64,000 bases of DNA from Gnetum montanum (GCA_015680685.1 MNCI01003374.1:62001-126000); one strand, 5' to 3'; shown: positions 32,600 through 62,040, counted from the first letter of the stretch. Program-made: numbers and translations. The notes: a model not told the origin generated them from the letters alone.

Positions 32600-34490
32600 C
32601 TCATTGTAAAATTGGTTAGTTCCCCTCAAAATATCTTGGTATCCCATTATTTTTTGGTAAGATGAAATTATCTACATGGTAGGATTTAATTCATAAGTTC
32701 AAGAAAAGGTTGACTAATTAGAATGAGAAACTTCTCTCTTAGGTAAGTAGACTTCAATTAATTAAATCAATATCACAAGCTACTCATCTTTACCTTCTTT
32801 TATGTTATAAAGCACTGAATCACTTCTTTTGTCATTGGAAAAACCTAAAAGATCCTTTCACTAGTTGATGAGTGGCGAGATACCCCTACACTCAACCATA
32901 CGAATACGAGCGTAGCACGCGCAATTTGGTCAAACTCCATAGACTAAGTGCCTACACGCCTCATGGAACACTTAAGGTTAATTATTCGTTGTCTTCCCAA
33001 ACTTACTTGTAGTTGTCACGGTGTATGGTTAAGCAAGTCTGAGGTATATGATTTTTATGTCTTTTTATGTTTTATCTCCTACGCTGACAAGGTGAAGGGT
33101 TGAAGAAACTAATTACTAACTTTAACTAATGAACTAAGTCTAAATTANNNNNNNNNNNNNNNNNNNNNNNNNNNNNNNNNNNNNNNNNNNNNNNNNNNNN
33201 NNNNNCATACACAAACTTGTGTTCAGGTACAATGTCTGCTTGAATAAAGATCCGTTCACTCTAGAGTTCCTATTGCGGGCACATGGAAAATATTCTATCT
33301 TTGGAGTGATCAATCTGCTAGAGTTTCACTACGGTCTAAGCCTAGGATGAGAAACAAGGGAGTGCCACCTCTTATTTATAGACTTGGCGGTGCACCGCGA
33401 TATCGCGTACGTGATATTGCGGGGAACGACACGATATCGCGTATGCGATATCGCGAGGGATGCGATATCGCGGCCCCTGCGATATCGCGTCTCATCACTA
33501 GTCCTTATTAAGAGCAAATACTTTTCATTCTATTAACTAGTAGACTATGTGTAAGGACGTTAGTGAAGGTGTTTAGCATGTCAGAGTTCTAAAAAATGTG
33601 AACTTGACTCTTCTTTATTTACTTATTTTTCAATTATATATTGTCAAGAAGCCTTGGGTTAGTATTATGAAGACCAAATGTTTATAGGGTGGTCTCTTAA
33701 TCCATAATGCCCCTGTAGTCTCTCATGTTTTAACAATATGGCATAGCTTTTGAATGTGCTTGAACCTTGTTTTACAATTTTATTCAAAATTTTAGTGGTC
33801 AATTCTATTGGGCTAATTAGGATAGCTATAAAGTGTAGCAGGCATATCATACTTTTTTTCATTATCAAAAAGATTGTTTAAAGAGTACATGATGGCATGT
33901 AGTTGTTGTTCCTAAACATCACACTTTCATGAGCAAGTATCTTTATGTAAAACTTCTAGTCAAAACATTTCTCTACTACAAAGGCCTCATTAACAATGAT
34001 TTTTGTGATAGATGCAAATGTGACAAAGAGATTATTGATCATGCTTTATATATCTACATATCGAATAATGATTTTTGGAATTATTTAAAAAAATTTACAA
34101 GCATTAACATCCACATATCAAGCCTTGTTAATGCCTTTAATCAATGTATTCGTTTGGCCTAGCAAAAGAGAAAAATTAAAGGATTTTTTTGTCACTACTT
34201 TACTACGTATGGTTTGCTCAAAATAGTTTCATCTTCTTGAGCAAAACCATTCATATTTCTATGCTTTTTGACCTTGCTCTCTACAATTGGTTCATGAGAG
34301 TGACCAAAGAACTAAACCATTGAGTACTTGTTTATTTGCAGGGATGTATTTTAATATTTACTTTTTACATCATTGGATGATGGATCTTTTGTCTCATGTT
34401 TTGGATCACCTAGTTCTTATTCAAATGTATTTGACTTATGTAGAATTAAGTTTTTCTTTCTCCTCAAAAAAAGGGAAAAAAGAAAAAAAA
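32600..34490 (+). mobile_element. Decayed 5'-truncated L1-type LINE split by a solo LTR
   Basis: KYLGIPLFFGK...KFKKRLTN*NEKLLS (32629-32740); zf-RVT CDRCKCDKEIIDHAL (about 34005); A-rich tail 34466-34490. Confidence 0.75.
32866..33497 (-). mobile_element. Solo LTR of the element-B Athila subfamily (contains an N gap)
   Basis: TGATGA...TCATCA termini with perfect TSD ctagt on both sides; CpG-intact GATATCGC repeats. Confidence 0.92.
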
Positions 34491-44770: not shown

Positions 44771-45536
44771 GATTGGCTTTCCTTGAAACTCTCATCCAAG
44801 CTCTGGGTGGTGGTGCACACATGTATTCCCAAGATTCTCCACTTTTGTCTCTCTGTGTGCCTCATTGATTTTGATCATGGTTTGCTGCTTCCCCTTCTTC
44901 ATCCATCATTGGTACTTCTAACTTTAGCTTTGGCAACCCCTTCTTCTTACTTGGCTCTTGGTGGCCCTAGTCGGTTGCCCTTTGTGGTTTTGGTGGGGAA
45001 TTGAGGCACTTTCCCTCAACAAGCGTCCTCATTGCCCATTGCTAACAAGTTTTTAAAAGAACTCTAGGCGTTGGACTTTGCTTCCACTAACTTGGATGAT
45101 AGCTTAGATGTTGAAGTGATCATCACTCCTGGGGCTGGGAAGTAGTTGTTGGCTTCATAGTTTGCCCCTACACGCTGGTCCAAATGGCTTGTAGGCATCA
45201 CTCCTATCGACCTTACTTGGTTTCCCCTAGCCCCTTTATGGTGGTCACATGGTTGCCCTAATAGTTCCACCTGTTCTTCGATGGCATTGGTTCCCTTAGA
45301 GACTATTCCTAATCTTGGTTTGGTGGTGTTTGTGTGGACTCCACTTTCTTCTTTAGCATTGGAAAGGTCATTGCTTGTGAACTCAACCGTGTTTGGTGGG
45401 TTGCCCTTTGATGCTTGCAGGCTCAGCACTTGGCTTCCCTTTTTTGTTTGGGAAAATTTTCCCATTAAGGCATTGATGGAGGAACTCTATCCTTTGGTTT
45501 GGGAGTAGTTTGCTCAACTAGTGCTCTAGGCCTTTN

Positions 45537-48199: not shown

Positions 48200-51100
48200 A
48201 AAAGACAGAAATGAAAAAGCTTGTAACCTTTGTTTTGTTGGGATAGAAGAAAAAGAAAATGAAAACCTACTTTAAGAAATGATAACTGTGATAAATGATA
48301 TTATGCATATTGAGCTGCCTAAAATAAAGGATGCACTTTATTTTGGGCCTAACAATGATAAACTTAGGCACATTGTTGTGAAATTTCATGATACAGATGA
48401 TAGATCCAAAGTTTGGAAACATCATAGTTAGTTAAAGGATTATAAAATTTGGATTAATGCAGATCTCACCAAAAGGGAACTATGGAGAAAGTGAAAGAAG
48501 CAAGAGTAGAAGGTTTTGTAGCATTTTTAGACGTAAGAGGTAATGCAATAATTACCAAAATTAAATAGTCAAAAAACTCTACAAAGAAGATATAAAATAT
48601 CTTCATTGTGGATTTTTAAACATTGATGAATCAATAATGGATAAAGTGAAGGTGTTATATAATATACTGTTCTTTAATAAATTTAACATTATTGGTATCT
48701 TTGAAACATAGGAAATTGAAGACTCTCTAGAAATTCTTGTTCCAAATTTTTATATTTTATCTTTTCTTTACAAAAGAAATGTAGATCATGGAAGACCTTT
48801 TGGAGGTTTGGCTATTTTAATTTGAAATTCTCTTCATAAGCAAGCCCAAATAGAAAATGCAGATAAATATATTCAGTATGTTTGGCTAAAATATGACAAC
48901 AAAAATCTTTTTTCTTTTTAGCTTTTTGCTACTTTGCACATAGAAAAGCTACTATCTATGAACAAGAATGCTTATCACGGAATTTTCCCTTTCAATCCCT
49001 TAGCATGGATATTACTGCTTTTGCTCAAAGAGGAAAAATTTACATATGTAGTGACTTTAATGCTAGAATTAGTTCTGAGTAGATCCTTATTAATTACTAG
49101 AATCCTCAAGGCTTTTTAAAATATGAAAACAGGGTAGAATAGAATCAATGCTCTGAAGATAAACACTTTAATTGGAAGAGAACATGTGTTAAAATGGGGA
49201 CAATGGCTATATCTATTGATTCTAAATGACATCAATAAATATTCAAAATCACGTGGCTTTACTTTTGCAGGGCCACAAGGTAGCTCCAGTATTGATTTTG
49301 TTCTTTCTAGCCTTGACAATGTTATCAACATCAAATGTTTTGAAGTAAATTAAAAAATAATTGAATCTTACGATCACCCTTTATACTTTATGTTATTAAT
49401 AGATATGCAACATATTAGATGTTTAGGAGGCAAAAGCATTTCAGAATAATTGCAAAAATGAGGAGGATTTCCAAAATAAAATCTAAAAGATTTGGAATCC
49501 AAGTGTGAGTCTTATAAAAACTCTAATTATAGCTATCCTAAATATTTATAAAGGTCAAAATATAAACAATCAACAATGGTTTGATGAAAAATGGAAGACA
49601 ACTAGAATTTTATTGAAGACCTATAAGTCACTAGAGACTACAAGTCATATAAAAATTCGATTTAAACTAAGAAGAGGGAATTTGTTGGATAGAGACATAA
49701 TATTTTATTAGAAATGATAAAGAAAGATCCTAACTATTTTTGTCATTTATTTTAAAGCAAACGAAGAACAAACTATGCTATCTTGCTCAAAGATATTGAA
49801 ATTTTTTATCAAGCTTTGTTTCATAGCAATGATAAAATAGAAGATTTTCAGAACAATGGTAATTGTTCATTTCTTTTGATGACATAATGCAGGGTATAAA
49901 AAAATTGATACCAAGAACAATTGCTAATATAAATAATTTAGATGAAGAAATGCTTAAATGGGCAAAGCTACTAGTATGGAATACTATCTGGAAGAAGTTA
50001 AATTTGCTTGTGCAAGTAGGGTTAGAAAAGGAATGGTGCATCAATGAAGCAGTTATGTTTTTTGAAAGGAGACAAAAAGATTTAAATATTTATAGCTTGA
50101 TTGTAATTAACAATATCTTTGCTAAGCTTTTGGGTACTATTCTAGAATCTATGCTTGGAAGATGGCCTGAAGAAAATCAAACGCATGCAATTTCCTGGCC
50201 AGGATTTAGGCAACATCATTCTACTATAAATTATCTTACCACTTGAAAATATCTTATGATAGATCAAAAGGTCCACACAAGAAAACTTTTATCTGCTTTG
50301 TAGATTTTTCTAAGGCCTATGATTCTATCATTTGAAGCAAGTTATGGAGGTGCTTGAAAAATTTAGAAGTTGCCAACATTGTTATCAGCTATCCAAAAAC
50401 TTTACAAAGAGGAATGCATTCAGTTTACAAATGGGTAAGAAAGAGTTTTATTTAATAGTTTTGTTGGTGTTAAACAGGATGTCCTCTTTCTCCTACTGAT
50501 TTGAGCTTTTTATTGAAAAATTTGAAGAGTGGACACATAAAATGCTAACTCCTTTTGCAATTTCAATTGGAAGCGGTCTTGTCACATTCTTTCTCTATGC
50601 TAATAGTGTTGCCTTAATTTCAAGTTCAATGAAAGGACTGCAACAAATGCCTAATCCTCTTAATGACTTTTGCTGACATTTAGGAATGAAAGTTAATGTC
50701 TAAAAAATAGAAATTGTGGTTTGTGGTATTCAAAATAAGCTGTACAATTTTACTATAGGACATGAATACGTGAACAAAAATTTTTCTTACAAATATCTTG
50801 GCCTAGAATGCTCTTGCAATCACAAATGGGATTAGTCCGTTATTCAAAGAGTTAGAAGTGGTACAGAATCCTTATTTTCTTTAAAAAGCAAATATAAGAA
50901 GGAATCTATTTCAGCTTGGGATATCCGAAAATAACTTTATCATGCCATTGGGTAACCTACTATTCTCTGTGGATGTGTTGTATTGTATGGGGTCCTACTA
51001 TATCAAATAAGTATTGGAAACAAATAGAACAAATATAAAACCTTTTATTACTCAATGAATTTAAAGTGAAAATATAGACACAATGCGATATTATGCTTTT

Positions 51101-51840
51101 TGAAGTAGAGAACATGCCATGAGAGGTTAAAGCTATTTGTTAGGTTATAGCCTACACATAATCTTTTTGCATCTTAATTGAACAGATATCCCAAAAAAGT
51201 GATGACAGAAGCCCATGATAAAAAATGGCTTCATGAGGGAGTTTTGTAGCTTAATAGATGGAATATTTAAGAGTACATTCTTTATTTTGATCCTAACCAA
51301 GTTCACAACTTGGTTAAAAAAGTAGTATATCAAAAACTTTGGGAAAATTTAGAAGGCAAAAAATAGTTCTATTTAAATAATATCAAGGGAGGCCTTAATT
51401 CAAGGGTAAACTATGTATCTTCTATTATTTCTCGTCAATTATGATGCACAATTAGTAGAGCATGAATGGGATCTCATCATCGGAGAGTTGAAACAAGTAG
51501 ATGACACAAAATTCCTTGTGAAGAATGAATATACCGATTGTGCATTATAAATAGCATTGATGATGAATACCAAATTTTTCTGCCATGCATGCCAATTGTG
51601 CATTACAAATAACATTGAAGATGAATACCATATTTTCTTGCAATGTTATGCATTGGAGCACATTAGACATATATGGAATATTATAGTTGCAAATTTGGAT
51701 GACTTGTTCCAAATGTTACAAAGAATACTTGGTAATTTTCTTAATGATGTTTTCAAAACTCATAGCATGTATATTTCTATTGTTCAATATATTTAGAGGC
51801 TCTATGGATGTAATAAAATCTTAGTTTCAATTTCATTTTT
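48200..51840 (+). mobile_element. Decayed near-full-length RTE/RTEX-like LINE (ORF1 remnant, APE endonuclease, RT, C-terminal Cys/His motif)
   Basis: ORF1-like HIVVKFHD...KIWINADLT; EN GIFET*, GRPFGGLAIL, SDFNAR, SSIDFVL; RT GFRQHHST, VDFSKAYDS, GVKQGCPLSP, LYANSVAL; C-terminal SHHRRVETSR...CQLCITNNIEDEYHIFLQC. Clade assignment is tentative. Confidence 0.8.
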
Positions 51841-52416
51841 AATTTAATGCTAAGCTAGTAACAACCATTTACTCAGGTTTAATAATGTTTGTGTAGGGGT
51901 CCTTAGGAGTTGTGGCTTCTATGTGTATGTTTTGTATAGTCACTGCCTTGTTTTGTTTTGTGTTTGTTTTGGAGGCCTTCATGGCTCCCTAGTATATGGG
52001 TTCGTCTTTGTTTGGCATAGAATTGTTTCCGTATGGGTTAATGTTGGTGTTTGCTCCATTACTTAGGCATTTTTTCTCTTGGTAGCATGATGTACTATGT
52101 TGTGCTCTGTTGAATATTTCTAGTTTCTTAATTTTTTTTTCGAGAAAGAGGTTGGGATTATATTAAAGGAGCAAAAGTATGTTACAAAGATTACATGCGA
52201 TTACAAGCGGTGGGCCTCATGGAGAGGTCCAACCGAGAGGGGAGGGCCCCCGAACCACAGAAACCGCGAGCGAGANNNNNNNNNNNNNNNNNNNNNNNNN
52301 NNNNNNNNNNNNNNNNNNNNNNNNNNNNNNNNNNNNNNNNNNNNNNNNNNNNNNNNNNNNNNNNNNNNNNNNNNNNNNNNNNNNNNNNNNNNNNNNNNNN
52401 NNNNNNNNNNNNNNNN

Positions 52417-52950
52417 TTCCTGCGAAAACCCGGCATCAGGGTGGTACCGCGCAGAGGTCCGGTGGATGTGCCGCCTGAGCTCTGCCCAGGAGCTCTCGCA
52501 GCTAATGCCCAGAACAAAGTATGGGCATCGCCCCTCCCGTAGCCATTGCCGGGCATTATGCCCGTGGGTGCGGTCAAGCTGTTTCTGCTGCTGGGCCTCC
52601 TCCGCCTGGAGCCGCTCCTGCTCCGCCCGTTCCTCCAGCTCGTGCTGTCTCTGGGCCTTCACCTCTTGCGTTAGTTCCTCCCGAACCTGGGCCCTGATTT
52701 CGTCGATGAGGCGGGCCCGGGCAGCCTCAGCAAGGAGCTCCTGTTGCCTGACCCGCTCCTGCTCGCGCTCGGTGACTTGGGCCTCAAAGTTGGCCCGGGC
52801 CTGCGCGATGGCCTCGTTCCACTTGGCCTCCCACTCTTCCCGCACCTCGTCCGCCGCTCATTGCGTAGCCTGCTGACGCTCCTCCTCCCAGTTCCTCCGG
52901 TCAGATGTCTCCGGCGGGGGGAAAACGAGCGCTCGGGGGAGCGCCGTGTC
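52417..52950 (-). CDS. LINE-J1 extension: E/Q/R-rich coiled coil followed by a DnaJ-type J-domain (HPD at 52435-52443)
   Basis: CPYFVLGISCESSWAELRRHIHRTSARYHPD aligns without gaps to J-domain helices I-II and HPD. The remainder falls in the N gap 52276-52416. One in-frame TGA at about 52860. Confidence 0.75.
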
Positions 52951-53099
52951 CATGTGGTCTTCTGCCCCCACGGAACCTGGGAACCCCAGCTGGGCCAATT
53001 ACTCCCCAATCCAGGCACCGCCTCAGCCAGCGGCCTAGCCAAGGGGGAGCACCACGAGCTGCCCCCCCACAGGGGGGGGGGGGGGGGGGGGGCAGCCCC

Positions 53100-53700
53100 C
53101 CACCCCCCGCCAGAGCGCCAAAATCAGACCAGAGTGCCGGTCGCGCCGTTTGAGCCTGAGCGTCTCTTTAAAGAAGCGGGGGAGGTTGACGGGGGTACCC
53201 AACCTGAGGCAACGCAGGAAGGCAAAGTGAAGGCCCTGCAGCTTGGAAGCGTTGCCAGACTGGACGAAGTAGCGCTCAATCAAATCAGTTCCCCTGGCCC
53301 ATAAGCACGGCAAAGAGGACTTGGGGACTTGCCGACTCTGGGTCTGAGGGACGGGCCCATCAAAAAACAGCTCTGCGTCCTCTAGCCCTCGGGTAGAGGG
53401 CAAGAGGATTTCCCCAGCGATTGGGGCCCCCAGACAGCTGGCAATCAAGGATTCGGCGACCCAAATTTCGCGCCCAGGAAAAAGGGTACGGTCGTTGACC
53501 CAGTTGGAGAAAAACGCATCATCTGCCAGATCAGGGTCCCCCACCAGCCGCTGTAGCGGCTCTGACCAGCCGCACTGGGTCACCAATCGCCAAAGCACCT
53601 CGTCAACCTGGAACGCGGCGCAGTCCGGTTCAAAAGTGGGCGCCTTTCCCATGGTAACCTCGATTTCTTTCCACGCTGCGACAGCCTGGGAGACCAAACG
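53100..53700 (-). CDS. LINE-J1 extension: plant-transposon-protein/PMD-like helical domain, in frame with the ORF2 WxxWKxxN motif
   Basis: CGWSEPLQ...AFFSNW...GREIWVAESLIASCLGAP...FLRCLRLGTPVNLPRFF within ORF 53035-53973. Confidence 0.6.
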
Positions 53701-56700
53701 CGGCAGAGGGGGGCACTGCTGCTGTTGAAAAACGGCGTTGTTTGGTGCCTTCCACACTACCCATAAAAGTAGCATGGCTAGGGAGTCGCCCGTGAGGCGT
53801 CTCGGGGGGGCATAGTCGCCGCGTGCCACGTGGCGCGCATGCAGGGGCACTCCGCCGCGAAGTGCTGCGTTGTTTCCTCCTCGGCGCCGCATGTAGGACA
53901 CGTCGCGGAACTTAGGATCCCACGCCGATGCAGTAGGGCCCGTATTGGCAACGCATCGTTTTTCAGGAGCCACAGGAAAAATTTAATTTTTTCGGGCAGG
54001 CATCCCTGCCATATCTGCCGCCAGCCGTCCATCCGAGGGTACTTGNCAAGGTCTGCATTGTGTGAGCATGCCGGTAGAGCCCCTGCCATGGCCTCGAATC
54101 TTGCGCACCCGAAACCCAAGGCAGATATTTGGTCTTCATGATTCGGATCCAAGGGATCGGTTCTACCTGGGGGCGCGAAAATCGGAGTAGTAACCGTTGT
54201 TGCCCGATCATCAGCTCGTCTTCGAAGGAGGTAACACCCAAGCCCCCAGCACTGCGGGGGCGCATGACCTGTTCCCAGCAGACTAGATGAATTCTGCGCC
54301 CCCCCCTTGCCCCCCTTCCAAATGAAGGTACGGACGAGAGAATTAACCGCAGAAATGATCGCATTCGGAGGCGTGGCCATGGTCGCCACAAACCTCGCGA
54401 TTGCCGTGAGGATTCCAGTGGCCACCAACAAGCGCCCTTTGCGACTGAGGAATCTAGTCGCCCAATGGCTCATTCTTCTCTCGATTTTTCCGAGCAGCGG
54501 GCCCCACACCGTAGTCCGTCCCCATCTGAAAAGGGGGATACCTAGATATGTGTCGTTGTACGTGCCTGGCAGGATATTCAGGATGTGTATCGCCCGGTTC
54601 TTAACCTCAGCATCCGCATTGAAGAAGTGGGCGGAGGATTTGGTTCGATTGATTTCCAGTCCCACCTCGGCCGCGAGACGAGACAAGGCAACGTTAATGC
54701 ACCGTGCCTGTGGGACCGTTGCTCTACTAAGCAACATCGTGTCGTCCGCATAGTGTTCGGTTCGGCATGCCACTCCGGCAATGTCTAGATCGTCCACCCC
54801 CGAGGTGCTGCAGTATTGCTGCATTAAGTCCATGGCGATGATGAAAAGGAGGGGTGAGAGCAGGTCCCCTTGCCTCAACCCCCGCCCAGGGGAGGAGAGG
54901 CCCCATAAACGCCCCCCCACATCAAAGGAGAAACCTGCTGAGGACTGCATGTGGATGCATAAGCGGATGAACTGCAAATCAAACCCTTTCTGTAACATGA
55001 TGGACTGCAAGGCCTCCCAGCTGAGTGTGTCATAAGCCTTGGTGATGTCAAGTTTGAGGCAAAGCCCAGGAAAGCTCGTATTCCGAAGCGAATGAAACAC
55101 CTCCTGCATGAGGAGGATTGGGTCCTGAATTGCCCGTCCTTGCATGAACCCCGCCTGGTTGGTCCCCACCAGCTTGGGCATGACCGGCATAAGCCGATTC
55201 ACTAGCAGCTTGGAGAAGATCCTGATAAGGACATTGCAGACCCCAATGGGGCGGAAATGCTCCGGGCGGTGTGCGTCCGATTGCTTTGGGATGCAGACAA
55301 TGCGGGAGCAGTTGAGTTCCCTTCGAACTTGTCTCCTGGCCAACATAAGATTGAACGCATCTAGAATATTGGGCCCCACAATATCTATGAAAGTTTTAAA
55401 AAACTCAAGGCTCCAACCGTCAGGACCTGGCGCTTTGCCACCAGGCATGCTAGTGATCGTGGCTGTGAGCTCCGACCATGAGAAGGGGGCCAACAGTCGG
55501 ACGTTGTCGTGCTCGCTCAGCACATGCTGCACGGGAACCAAGATGGGCATGGTGGGGCGCCTGGCCCAAATCCCGCGCCAGTATTGCATCAGCTCGTGCG
55601 CAATCTGTTGTGGATCATCAGTAGTTTCGCCGGCCTAATTGCGGAGGCAACGGGGTTGATAGTCCCCCCGGGTTTTGGCCATAGCGAAGAAGAATCTGGT
55701 CTGTCGGTCCCCCTCCCTAATCCACCGGACTCGGGAACGTTGTCACCAGTACGTCTCCTCTTCGAGGTCAAGGGATTGGAGTTGCCGCAACGTGTGCAGC
55801 TCCTCCACGTGTAAATCCTCACCTGCTTCCTGTCGGGCCTGGATCTGGCCAAGCTGGGCACGGAGCTTCCGTATGCCAGTTCGGAAGGAGAACTTTACCT
55901 CCACAGGGAGGGCCCTGATGGCCCACTTCATCCGAAGCAAGGCACCTTTGAGGAAATCCCGTGGGTCCCCCCGGCCGGGTCGGTAGTTAGCCCAAATCTC
56001 CTCCACCATCGGCCTCAGCCATAGCTTGGCTAACCAGGCAACCTCGAAGCGGAAGGGATGAGGGGCCCTAGGCTTATCCGGCCCAATTAGGCAGGTCAGC
56101 GAACGATGATCGGAAGCCACCCTTTCCTGGCCCACCACACGGATGGAGGAGTGGAGCAGGAGATCAGCGCTAACCCAAACCCGATCAATCCGGGTGAGAA
56201 CCCGGTCCGGTCCCTTCCTCCGATTACTTCACGTGAAGCGGCAGTTCTCAATAGGCAAGTCCACGAGGGAGAAGGTGGCCAGGAAAGCCTGGAATTCCGC
56301 AGCCCCCTGCGGCGGGCGGGCACCCCCTCGGACTTCTCCCAAGGGTGAAGGCGCTGGTTGAAGTCCCCAACCACCAGCCACGACCGATGGTCGGGGACCA
56401 GCGTCGTCACCCGGTTCAGTTCGCGCAGCCGCTCCCCCCACTGCTAGGCGCCATAGAAATTAGTCAACCAGATCCCGTGCACAGGGACCTGAACAGTGAT
56501 GGCCCACTGCGATGCATCAAGGAGGTGCATGACACAGCGGGCAAGAATGGCGAGTCCGCCGGCCCGACCCCAGCAGGGGTGCGTGTAGGTAGTCCAGCCC
56601 TCCCACTGGAGGAAGTGCGACTCCGTGGGCTGTAGTTTGGTTTCCTGGAGACAAACAATGTCACAGTCTTCATCTCGGATAATTCTGCGCAGGGTGTTTC

Positions 56701-56748
56701 TTTTGTAGGGGGTACCCTGTCCCCTGCAGTTCCAGCTGAACACCTTCA
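53700..56748 (-). pseudogene. LINE-J1 ORF2 core: APE endonuclease, RT, zf-RVT (a few frameshifts and stops)
   Basis: MKVFSWNCRG, CLQETK, GDFN, SDH; KAPGPDG, FRPIGVCN, KLDITKAYD, GLRQGDLLSP, HYADD, YLGIPL; CPTCGAEEETTQHFAAEC; WVVWKAPNNAVF. Confidence 0.95.
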
Positions 56749-57199
56749 TGTATGACCAGAGGTGCGGCGTTGGTAGACCTCCCGCAAGGTCTGTTGCTGC
56801 CCCAAGTCGATATCGCGCTGGGTTTGTTTGTTTCTGGTACTGGTCTCGGTTGGTCGGCCCGGGCGGTTTTCGCCGGCTCGCACCACTGGGCTGCACCCTG
56901 GTTAATTTAATTGACCAGTCTTTCCCTTAAAAAAATACATAAAATCATGTTCACAAAACATCAAAGATGTGCAAACATGAATTTTTATTAGTGTATGTAC
57001 ACCGCAAGATCATCATAAACCAAAAGGTTGAAGATGATGTTACGAGTATCCTTTGCCAAAGAAATGAAGGTACGAGTTGGTGTAGAAAAAAGTTAGGATA
57101 CTGGTTCCTAAAAAGGAAGAGAAGAAAAATACATGAAATCATGTGCATGACAAAATTTAAAATGTAGTCGTAAGCAAATACTTATGAAACTGAAGAGAA

Positions 57200-60100
57200 G
57201 TAAGAGGTCATGGGCTTAGAATGGTGGGAGAAGATGATGAGCATGGTAGCAGCAGAGATGGGAGTGGAGATGTAGATGTTCTCTACAATGGTGGACCTTG
57301 GATTTACTAGAAAATGAGAGGCAGAGGAGGTAACAAGAGTTGTGTTGGTGCTGCTAAGCATGCCATCTTGGGGGCTACTAGCTGGGTTGGCCTTGATGAG
57401 GGTTTTGGATTGTTGACATTGATGAGTGCAGGATTCGTTGGTTAGGGCCTACAAGGTACAAGTGCTTGGCACCTTAGGATGGACAACATCAAAGAGGTTA
57501 GCAGGTCCTAGGGAGTGATGTGCCTTAAGTTGCATGCTCTCGCTTTGGAGGGTTTGCACATGTTTGAATGCAGCCTCTTCAGCAAGTTTGTTTTAGCTGG
57601 TGTGTAGTTGTGATTGGAACTTGTTTGGTGTTGGGTGATCTCCTCATGGGGAGTTGCAGATCTAGAGCTTTGTTCACTGATAGGGGAGCTTATGCTTGTC
57701 GTGTTTCCGAAGTTGGGGGCTAGAGATTAGGTCCTATTGGGGGACCCCTAGTTCTTTGGCACCAAGGGCTTGGCCTTGATGCCTTGGAGGCTAGGTGCCC
57801 ATCATGCATTGGTGTGGGTTAGGATGTTAGGAGTCCCTTGGTATTTATGAACCACAAACTTCTTGCACACGATCATGGGGTTTTTCGGTGAGTTCATCTT
57901 GTTTGACAAATTCAAAAAAACAAAAGAGTGCATGGATATGTTAGATTTTGTGTTTGGCGGTCCCTCTTCGCAGATGACCTCCTCAAAGAGGTCACTCTGG
58001 GTCTGCCAACAGGGGAAGAAATTCTTGCGATCAAGTACGAGAACATCCATTTGTTGGCATCAATGCCCTCAGGCTTTGTGATACATGGCCTATGGGTTTT
58101 GCGGCAAAGGAAATCATACCATGGAAGAATGCTACCTATGTCACAGAGGAACACATTGACATCAGAAGGAGTTTGGTGACCTCTCCCTCTCCTTGCACCT
58201 TTTTTTTAGGGCGGGGGTGGGGGGCGTGGGAATAGGTCTAGAGATGAGGCTGAAGAAAACCCAACAAAAAACTGACTTAGGGACCTGGATGATCCTAAAA
58301 GGGGTATACAAGAAAAGGGCTACCAGTAGGCCATGAATATCATCTCATGGAACTGCAGGGAACAAGGTACCCTCTACAAAAGAGGTACCTTGAAGGAATT
58401 GATGCGAGTTGGTAACTCTGACGTTGTGTGCCTATAGGAGACCAAGCTCCAAGTCACACAATGTCAGGTTTTAGAATAGCAAGGATGGAATGCCATTTTT
58501 GTGGTATCTTGTGGGAAGCCGGGGGGTGGGGGGTGTTTGGTGACTATTTCTAAGATCCTAATGCACCTGTTTGAATAATCCTAGTTGAGCATCACCACCT
58601 TCATGCCTTTGTAGAGACTTTAGCTAACAAACTTCTACAGGCCACATGATCTAGAAGCTAGACTAAAGGAGCTACACAAGATTGTGGGACAAATCCCTAA
58701 TAGCTTGGATCATGATTGGTGATTTCAATCAACGGTCATTCTTGTGGGAAAAGATTGGGGGAGTCTCAACCCCACCCCCAAGTAGCCAAGAATCCTTGTT
58801 CTACCTCCAAAACTTTGAACTGGTTGATGTGGAGGTTAAAGGATGTTGTTACACCTGGCACAATAGATGGAATGTCAAAGATTGACAAAGTTTGGGTCAG
58901 TTTGACATTGTTTCTTACAAATGAAATTCATGTCATTGAACTTGAAAGAAGGGCCTTTGGTCATAGAGTGCTTCTTTGCTCCATTCATACACCTGAAAAG
59001 TTGGGGCCAAGACTTTTCAGACTGGAAAGGTCATGGTTAAACAAACCTTGGCTTGCCCACCTCGTTTCAGATATCTAGAAGAGATACTTGTCTCAGACGG
59101 ATCCTAGAGATTTCCTCAAAAAGGGACTTATTGCCCTCAAAAAGAGGATACATGAACAACAAAAGGGAGATAAATATGCTTTCAAAAAGCATTGTGCTTG
59201 CTTGAAAGAAAGATTGTTGGAGATCTGAGCTAGCTAGGAGCTAGGGCAATCCTCAGATGAGGAAGAGCATGATCTCCTCTTCCAACTACATCTCTCGAAG
59301 GAAGAAGAGTAGTACTGGAAGAAACGAGCACAAATGAGATGGCTACATGATGGAGATAGGAATGCTAAGTTGTTCTTTGTTGCAGCTAAAACGAACAAGG
59401 AAGGTAAAAGAATCCATAGCATCACGCAAGGGGAAAGCACTGTGCATGATGAGCAAGTCATTGCCCATGCTATGCAACAATACTGGTCTGGCATTTGGTT
59501 TGGGGGAGATCCCTCTCCTAGTTCCATCCACATCTAGAGGGTCATTCAAGTGCAAGAAAATGAAAGGTTGATTGCACCTATCACTAAGCAAGAGCTTTCT
59601 GAGGTCTTTAGATCTATGAGAGCTAATAGGGCCCCAGGTTCAGAGAGATGGGTGGAAGTTTTTAGACACTTCTTCAACATTCTTGGCAACAACATTGTTG
59701 ATGCTTTCAATCTCATGCTTAGATGGGGACATGTTAGACATGAAATAAATTTCTTTAGAATTGTGTTGATACCAAAAATTACCCACCCCATTGAACCAGC
59801 TCACTTTAGGCCAATAGGGGTTTGTAATACGTTGCTTAGGTTGTTTACAAAGATTCGTATTGCTAGACTACAACCACTCATGCCCTCCATAGTGGGCTTT
59901 TGGCAAATTGGATTTATCAAGGACATGTACATTCAGGACCAAATTCTATTATTGCAAGAGATCATGCACTCTATGCAGAAAGCAAAATTCCTAGGTATGT
60001 GCATCAAGCTTGATATTGCTAAGGGCTAAGATAAGGTCTACTAAGGTCCACTTAACGACATTATGCTATGAAAAGGGCTCCACCCAAAATTTGTTGATCT

Positions 60101-62040
60101 ATGCATTAACCTTTAGGCTTTAGGGGCCTACTCTTTTGATATTAATGGACGTCTTTGGGGATTTTCTTCCCTCTGTAGGGGTTTATGCCAAGGAGACCCC
60201 CTTTGACTATATCTCTTTATCATCACCATGGACACTATGAATACATATTGTAAGGCTGAAGGCATTTGCCATTTGAGCATTGAGGGGGTCACGTGTATTG
60301 TTGAACACTATGCAGATGATAGGATTTTAGTCATGTGGTCGATGGCTCCATAGGTGGAAGTAGTGTCTAGAGCCCTCCAGAAAATGTCCAAAGAGATTAG
60401 ACTTACTATGAATTGGGGAAAATCCATGGCTCATTTCTTTTGCACGGACACAATGGTGAAATGAAGGATATGTAGGATGTTGGGGATCCAACAAGGGTCT
60501 TTGTAGGACTCATATTTAGAAGTGCCCATGTTTGCATGAAATTGCAAGGCCCCTTGGACAGTGCTGATATAGAGAATCCAAACTAGAGTGCAACACTAGG
60601 CTTCCAGAATCTTGACCTAGAAGGGCAGAATACTGTTGGCTTCTTCTATCCTATTAGAAATGGGAAAATTCATAGCTTTGGTTGATTATCTTGGTATCCC
60701 GACTATGGGGGAGACAGTGTTGCCCTTAGGGCAAGGGCTTCAAGATGCTGAGAGCTTCTTCCTTGGATTGGTCCCAAAAATCAAGAGCAGCTAAGTCCCC
60801 AAGTTGGCCTTACCTTTGCTTTGGTAGGATGCTATGGAGCTTGTGGAACTTTTCTTCTTCTAGTTGGGTAACATGTGAAAGCTCTAGGGAGTGCACTTTA
60901 CCTTCCTCTGTTGCATGCAGCTAGGCAAGCCACCTAATCTTCCAAAATTTTTCTTGGTTGCCCTTCATTGGAGAAGAAGGGGACACCACTTTGGCTTGAG
61001 CTTGGCCTTATGGAAAGTAGTGCGGCTTGTGGAGGCACCATTGGCTAAGCCCACTTTTGTCACCATGCCATATACTAAATGTAGGCTATCATAGGAGGGA
61101 GAGTCCTCCTCCTCTATGCAAGCCATCTTGGAAGGAGGAGCTGATGGTGGTAGGGGAAGGTTTGGATTGGTATGTCGCTACCACATATTGACCCTTCTCC
61201 TTGTAGGAGTAGGTCTAGACCCTCGAGGATCATATTCGTAGAGAGTTGCAACGAAAGTTTGAAGTTGACCTCCATAGGGACACTATTGAGGTTGACGCCA
61301 AAGTCAGGGTAGAGGAACAAGCATGATGGGAAGTTGAGCTACAAAGATGGGAAGAGGAGGCCAAGGCTAAGTGATGGGAGGAAGAACAATAGCTTAGAGA
61401 GGTGGCTGCGAATGAGCAGCATCAAAAGGAGCTACAAGACGTTGCATTTAGAAGTGAGATGGAGGACCAGCTCTGGGAGCAAATTAGGGAGTACTTGCAC
61501 TAGGAGGAGTTGGAGTGGCTGTGAAGAGAGGAAGAGGAGGAAGAGCAGCGTGTCAGGGCCCTTTTGGAGGAACAACAAATTAAAAGGAACCATGATGCTA
61601 CACACAAAGCCAATGCCCAATGATGGTTTTGCATGGGAAGATGCCCATGTATGGTCATGAGAATAAGTCACAATGTCTTGTGGGCTAGGCTGAGGAGATG
61701 TATTAGGACTACTTCCGCTAAGTTTCACTTTGAGGCCACCATTGAATCTGCCAAAAACAACATGAAGAGTAGTGTAAGGAATTTCAGGAGGCTGCAATGT
61801 TTGTTGCCTTGAAACACTATAGGGCAGTCCTGGATGCGGTACACGCCCAGGAACAGGCACGGTGCCCCTGTACTAGGCTGCCAAGGTCCATCGGATGCCA
61901 TCATTCACAAGGACCAAGAAGGGTTGCCCGATGTGGGTGTGGATAGCCTAGTGATGGGGCAATTTTTGTTTTTTGTCAAGCACCCCTTGTTTGCTGTCCT
62001 GTTCGTTTTTGTTTGCTGACTGCTGGAATTAAAGTTAATC
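57200..62040 (+). mobile_element. LINE-J2: older decayed relative of LINE-J1, with ORF1, ORF2 and the same C-terminal module
   Basis: ORF1 DUF4283-like VWVRMLGVPWYL...GYVRFCV (about 57810-58050); ORF2 ATG 58333 MNIISWNCR; RT FRPIGVCN, KLDIAK, HYADD; extension 60680-61025; coiled coil 61280-61600; J-like 61642-61835. Both ends approximate. Confidence 0.88.

Follow-up and report, generated by a model that had tools for sequence, protein, structure and literature searches.

Plant LINEs of the L1 clade encode an ORF2 protein in which an endonuclease (EN), a reverse transcriptase (RT) and a zinc-binding domain (zf-RVT) follow one another, often with an archaeal-type RNase H (Pfam RVT_3) in addition. 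The ORF2 proteins of LINEs are scarce, of large size and difficult to fold, and L1 particles contain host chaperones; we know of no LINE that encodes a chaperone-recruiting domain of its own. J-domains have a fold of four helices, bind Hsp70 where its nucleotide-binding domain meets the linker and stimulate its ATPase. Among mobile genetic parasites, the closest precedent for such a domain is found in the polyomavirus T antigens, which carry a J-domain with an HPD motif to use the Hsp70 of the host. In cellular proteins, the type III (class C) J-proteins combine the series Y..LG, basic helix and HPD with a long neighbouring helical region.

Here, we analysed a window of 64,000 nt from Gnetum montanum (GCA_015680685.1 MNCI01003374.1:62001-126000), and all coordinates given below are positions in this window. 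A first-pass annotation had proposed that an L1-type LINE in this window encodes a J-domain downstream of its EN, RT and zinc finger. We followed up this proposal with profile, structure and read-based searches, and with the help of a second, diverged element in the same window.

Results

The element, referred to as copy 1, is a 5'-truncated, GC-rich L1-type LINE on the minus strand, which runs from about 56896 to 52132. Its GC content is 59% as compared to 38% across the window, and the GC profile falls at about 56900. The 5' end and the apurinic-type endonuclease domain of ORF2 occupy 55990-56896 (Pfam Exo_endo_phos, E 1.6e-10), and a Pinus L1 protein could be aligned to this region at 56749-55989. 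The reverse transcriptase domain RVT_1 is located at 54600-55292 (E 8.6e-27) within a 603-aa ORF (53778-55589), followed at 53826-54035 by zf-RVT (E 2.1e-16, profile positions 16-85 of 85), which usually forms the end region of ORF2 in plant L1s. All three domains lie on the minus strand in this order, which is the hallmark of the L1 clade and agrees with the classification of the element in the first-pass annotation. Plant L1 ORF2 proteins are colinear with copy 1 down to about 53665, just beyond a W..WK..N..F motif at 53728-53763 (minus strand), and the RNase H parts of these proteins gave no alignment in copy 1 past this point. The best database relatives of the RT are plant L1s from Cannabis, Linum, Fagus and Pinus taeda with an identity of only about 31%, and none of the best plant L1 relatives contains PF00226, the Pfam DnaJ family.

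Copy 1 starts about 50 codons ahead of the endonuclease and lacks ORF1; it is therefore truncated at the 5' end, which is a trait of this copy and not of the family. At the other end, a 3' UTR of 60 nt (52141-52200) and a 9-nt poly(A) (52132-52140) form the 3' end of the family (52132-52200, minus strand), as the k-mer depth drops there from about 4,300 to 44 at around 52133. A comparison of 56900 with 52131 revealed no clear target-site duplication. Raw RNA reads of run X23, which are 90-95% alike and hence stem from other copies, pile up on the 3' UTR at 52132-52200 and carry untemplated T runs before 52132, corresponding to A tails longer than that of copy 1. These reads derive either from polyadenylated sense-strand RNA of the family or from copies in which the genomic A tail is longer. 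Adjoining the poly(A) of copy 1, the AT-rich plus-strand sequence 49860-51800 looks by eye like the end of an older LINE with a zinc-finger-like Cys/His pattern; Pfam gave no match to it at E 0.01 or below, and Rfam gave no match anywhere in the window. Apart from the assembly gap discussed below, the window contains a 58-N gap at 33148-33205 and single N at 45536, 46156, 46444 and 54046, the last of which lies inside ORF2.

Coding-like sequence continues for about 1.3 kb past the point where the alignment with plant L1 ORF2 proteins ends and reaches up to the assembly gap, beyond which the 3' UTR and the poly(A) follow. The extension announced by the first-pass annotation is hence present, and it is slightly shorter than the 1.5 kb given there. 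From the zinc finger onwards, it consists of a helical domain, a poly-Pro run, a linker, a helix rich in E, A, Q and R and a 31-residue stretch with an HPD motif (52432-52524). The first part, which we refer to as the accessory domain (53093-53727, minus strand, about 210 aa), begins after the W..WK..N..F motif, at the position where other plant L1s have RNase H. Pfam found no family at E up to 10 in the region 53035-53973, which includes the accessory domain, and a single-sequence AlphaFold2 (AF2) model of 230 aa was useless (pLDDT 38). In the ESM Atlas, its nearest neighbours are clusters of ATHILA ORF-1 and Transposase_32 (score 0.89, 140-142 shared features). Domains of these two types occur in additional ORFs of Athila LTR elements (PMC11728184). 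The profiles PF20167 and PF03078 gave no match to the accessory domain at E up to 10, and a kinship to ATHILA or Transposase_32 is a lead only.

The accessory domain is followed by a 21-nt G/C homopolymer (53072-53092), which reads as seven Pro and whose length is uncertain, and by a linker (52916-53071, minus strand) that is open in a frame one base off. Next comes the helical stretch (52549-52857, minus strand; E 21%, A 17%, Q 15%, R 14%). At about 100 aa, it is somewhat shorter than the 120-aa coiled coil described previously, and it could be either a coiled coil or a single charged helix. The J-domain-like stretch at 52432-52524 (minus strand) covers the positions of helix I and helix II as well as the HPD loop, with the HPD tripeptide at 52435-52443.

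The reading frame of copy 1 is broken at four sites, namely by frameshifts at 53804-53810, 53072-53092 and 52915 and by a TGA at 52858-52860 (minus strand). The earlier list of two homopolymer indels, one TGA and the gap was correct as far as it went, and lacked the frameshift at 52915. At the first site, a run of seven G, the frame of zf-RVT shifts to that of the extension. Loose contig ends from runs X5 and X8 fit 53804-53810 only with one additional G, which would bring the two frames into phase. The TGA is specific to copy 1, as CGA (Arg) replaces it in 90% (X1) and 95% (X5) of the read depth. About half of the depth, or a larger share of it (110/205, 137/174 and 30/53), has an additional G behind 52915, and with this G the linker rejoins the frame of the helix downstream. 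Among the best-supported 33 differences between copy 1 and the reads, which were described site by site without building a consensus, G>A and C>T changes in copy 1 predominate, as is usual for the decay of methylated DNA. Because the majority of the reads has CGA and the two extra G, a single ORF from the endonuclease to the J-like end is plausible for younger copies of the family. The first-pass annotation had left undecided whether the extension is an ORF2 fusion or a separate ORF3; the reads, in their majority, would agree with a single fusion to ORF2, with the homopolymer at 53072-53092 left unread and read coverage interrupted around it at 53059-53108.

At several Trp and Cys codons of copy 1 (52952, 52970, 53715 and others), most reads have CGG or CGC, which encode Arg. 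The apparent amino-acid make-up of copy 1 has thus been altered by CpG decay, and peptide features taken from single copies of the family can therefore mislead.

A second element with the same module, copy 2, is located on the plus strand at 58348-61943. It is an older, decayed and diverged LINE with an RT at 59478-60677, the core of the accessory domain at 60678-61022 and the helix together with the J-like part at 61423-61743. Its RT is 44% identical to that of copy 1 over 401 aa and the modules follow in the same order. In tblastn searches, the accessory domain is 50% identical between the two copies across 115 aa (E 2e-28; the core kept in copy 2 corresponds to 53101-53445 of copy 1), and the charged helix and J-like part are 39% identical over 107 aa (E 7e-14). 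The linker at 52916-53071 has no similarity to copy 2. With regard to its state of preservation, copy 2 has suffered an internal deletion of about 1.1 kb, at which RT residue 402 jumps to residue 177 of the ORF behind the zinc finger, with the loss of the C-terminal end of the RT, of zf-RVT and of the beginning of the accessory domain. It contains many stops, and its GC content of 44% as compared to 59% in copy 1 is in line with long C-to-T decay.

Translated in the sense frame, the module matches copy 2 with 60 and 107 bits, as compared to at most 27 and 61 bits for the other five frames, and there is almost no DNA similarity between the modules of the two copies. The module has therefore diverged in the manner of a protein, and roughly as fast as the RT. 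It is also represented throughout the family. The k-mer depth is 3,658 in the bin with the J-like stretch and 4,698 in the bin with the end of ORF2, and in the runs of three organisms the module and the end of ORF2 are covered to a similar depth. The extension thus belongs to a very high-copy LINE family, with members in the thousands. The module codes for protein, is a family trait in several organisms and was kept in two LINE lineages whose RTs are only 44% identical. Weak matches to the module behind the zinc finger at 44.6-46.2 kb (E 0.6-9) were not significant and were rejected.

These observations also bear on the origin of the module in copy 1. The assembly gap could join contigs of different copies in a family of thousands of members without a bridging contig, and the module might then stem from another locus, or it could represent flanking host DNA taken up in a one-off 3' transduction. 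Absence of the module from other copies was the outcome that, in the first-pass annotation, would have pointed to such a transduction. The module is instead found in copy 2 in the same order, and three organisms show family-level depth across both the module and the 3' UTR, for which reasons the one-off transduction was rejected. In addition, ORF2 and the module share one contig and are both to the same side of the gap. No more than the 135 bases on the left of the gap could derive from another copy of the family. We consider a transduction or an assembly chimera to be very improbable.

The 31-residue start of a J-domain reported previously is present in copy 1 as the exact peptide. A 44-aa piece containing it matched Pfam DnaJ (PF00226) without gaps at profile positions 2-32 of 63 (E 8.4e-4, 19.8 bits), so that the profile check suggested by the first-pass annotation returned the expected family, in register, for the first half of the domain. 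The gathering cut-off of the family, 27.8 bits over a domain of about 63 positions, was not reached, and the match stops at the gap. As a domain of half length cannot reach this cut-off, the failure weighs less than that of a full-length domain would. In BLASTP, the stretch aligns without gaps to residues 7-35 of E. coli DnaJ with 38% identity and 62% positives, and the HPD, which follows the basic helix II in a loop, is aligned to the HPD of that protein. Around 30 solved J-domains match the piece in register in a PDB search (E 0.04-2), and 22 of its 30 ESM feature matches are DnaJ clusters.

The agreement with J-domains could also be due to chance or convergence, in which case the tail of a transposon accessory protein would look like the beginning of a J-domain without any relation to Hsp70. 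The match is below threshold and spans 31 residues only, kringle and CD1d chains score as high as J-domains in the PDB search, and the stretch had been singled out by eye among about 128,000 residues of translation. A search with a two-sequence profile against the PDB was uninformative and returned one DnaJ match only (E 1.7). The structure prediction called for in the first-pass annotation gave little help to its proposal, as the single-sequence AF2 model of the 44-aa piece is a hairpin with a helix, which is not J-like and of low confidence (pLDDT 70). To address the concern that the match was picked by eye, a J-domain HMM made from four E. coli J-domains was used to scan the 1,491 stop-free pieces of the six-frame translation of the window. 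The J-like piece ranked first with 11.6 bits, 5 bits ahead of the next one (6.4 bits), which answers this concern. Against chance also speak that the match keeps the register from profile position 2 onwards and has the HPD correctly placed, that the stretch belongs to a conserved coding module and is in its sense frame, that the ESM features indicate DnaJ and that the read majority moves the stretch nearer to the J-domain consensus: at 52463, most reads have R in place of H, as do copy 2 and the consensus. Taking both sides together, we regard a chance or convergent likeness as unlikely.

With regard to the HPD itself, no variant of its codons was found among the read variants listed; copy 2, on the other hand, has HFE at this position (61726-61734), no longer has the Y and the G that belong to helix I, and has no DnaJ signal in either frame, before or beyond the HFE. 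For this last reason, copy 2 was rejected as a source of the missing half of the J-domain. An attempt to read the gap as 101 nt of copy 2 was dropped, as the underlying match was non-significant.

What follows the HPD in the assembly is a gap of 141 N (52276-52416) with an estimated length, which starts six codons after the motif. The 214-aa ORF at 52201-52845, which the first-pass annotation had treated as translatable, is an artefact of N being read as X across this gap. Family-level sequence is present on both of its sides, with a depth of about 960 on the right and about 1,080 on the left, and no contig spans the gap among those listed from four runs. Behind the gap, a tail of 24 codons with a stop at 52201-52203 (52201-52275, minus strand) belongs to the family (depth of about 1,080), and its phase to the J-like part is not fixed by a gap of estimated length. 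The tail has no significant similarity to copy 2, where it did not score above shuffles, or to J-domains, and no J-like second half with helices III and IV could be recognised in any of the six frames of the window. The estimated length of the gap, 47 codons, leaves room for the at least 26 residues that the J-domain still needs, which is compatibility and not evidence.

Loose contig ends enter the gap by 16-25 nt from the right side, and they differ between runs. In seven contigs of run X1, the frame is kept for three codons into the gap and a TAG follows as the fourth, while three contigs of run X5 have TCG, a sense codon, at the position of this TAG. The two gap-edge sequences may differ by a 10-nt indel, which would fit poorly with a constrained domain and thus argues against a complete J-domain. 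In line with this, the J-like part might be a truncated relic, which derives from the captured 5' part of a host J-protein mRNA or has lost the remainder since, and with which the ORF ends about ten codons past the HPD. Helices I and II and the HPD would then be kept without forming a working J-domain, and the functional parts would be the accessory domain and the charged helix. The TAG in the X1 contigs, the sequence difference between runs right behind the HPD loop and the lack of a second half in the window all agree with such a relic, as does copy 2, which has a TAG 12 codons after the HFE in a frame consistent with that of copy 1. This TAG is perhaps there by chance, given six decay stops in the 110 codons upstream, and the sense codon of run X5 speaks against a general stop at this site. 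Moreover, the J-like segment, with 19 of 43 columns invariant, is the best-conserved part of the tail between the two lineages, which would be odd for a useless relic. A relic of this kind is, in our estimation, improbable.

Discussion

On the basis of the sequence evidence, we propose that the ORF2 of this LINE family is probably fused to a J-domain, an assignment that we judge to be somewhat better supported than not. The first-pass annotation had claimed an encoded J-domain outright; the match to the first half of the domain supports this in part, and the second half would fall into the gap. A further-reaching reading, namely that an L1 lineage exchanged its RNase H end for a module with a complete and working J-domain and kept it through a deep divergence of lineages, is one we put forward tentatively and would rate at somewhat less than even.

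Copy 1 shares EN, RVT_1, zf-RVT and the W..WK..N..F motif with plant L1-clade LINEs, and has the poly(A) tail and 5' truncation in common with them as well. It differs in that its RT is at best about 31% identical to any annotated one and in that it lacks the RNase H, in whose place about 415 codons or more of additional sequence hold the accessory domain without a Pfam match, the charged helix and the J-like end. The likeness to polyomavirus T antigens would be that of a mobile genetic parasite with an HPD J-domain of its own. The polyomavirus J-domain is N-terminal, part of a DNA-virus protein and functionally tested, whereas the putative one of the LINE is C-terminal, has been read for half of its length and is known from sequence only. 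To the cellular type III J-proteins, the element is similar in the order of Y..LG, basic helix and HPD beside a long helical region; no cellular relative of its coiled coil and J segment was found. As for the additional ORF of Athila elements and Transposase_32 (PF03078, PF20167), these are the nearest protein-language-model neighbours of the accessory domain, and neither Pfam nor sequence searches matched the two.

Searches for relatives of the module were negative throughout. Neither the coiled coil with the J piece nor the 312-aa ORF of the extension had a match in protein searches, and an exhaustive search of 1.84 billion representative proteins returned 0 matches to the module. Metagenome contigs, searched with module peptides and with a degenerate DNA pattern of the J-like stretch, gave nothing, and the same was true for viral contigs and prokaryote genomes. 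A literature search found no description of a LINE with a J-domain, in agreement with the statement of the first-pass annotation that this architecture had not been described. To our knowledge, a complete J-domain at this site would be the first encoded by a cellular transposable element.

We propose the following explanation. Copy 1 would be a dead, 5'-truncated member of a very high-copy family of plant L1-type LINEs, the ORF2 of which would run past the zinc finger into a C-terminal module with the J-domain as its last part, followed by a short 3' UTR and poly(A). The sequence hidden in the gap would complete the J-domain. From the J-like stretch we infer that the family may recruit Hsp70: the J-domain would dock on the Hsp70 of the host through its HPD and trigger the ATPase activity of the chaperone. 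Hsp70 would then likely work on the large ORF2 protein of the element itself or on its RNP, during folding, assembly or release. An action on silencing complexes of the host could be an alternative effect, which we regard as less likely. A single acquisition, by read-through or a template switch onto a host mRNA, is the probable source of the module, which would then have become fixed in the lineage.

Plant J-proteins act together with DNA-methylation readers, in silencing as well as in anti-silencing, and a J-domain borne by a transposon could therefore bear on the escape from silencing in plants. If the likeness of the accessory domain to the Athila proteins is real, LINE and LTR elements share an accessory domain. 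Even without a J-domain, a conserved stretch of about 415 codons or more at the place of the RNase H, in a family of thousands of members, is an undescribed L1 architecture. If the J-domain is complete, it would mean that the Hsp70 switch can be captured by retrotransposons as well as by polyomaviruses, and the family would provide a natural handle on the question of which step of retrotransposition needs Hsp70.
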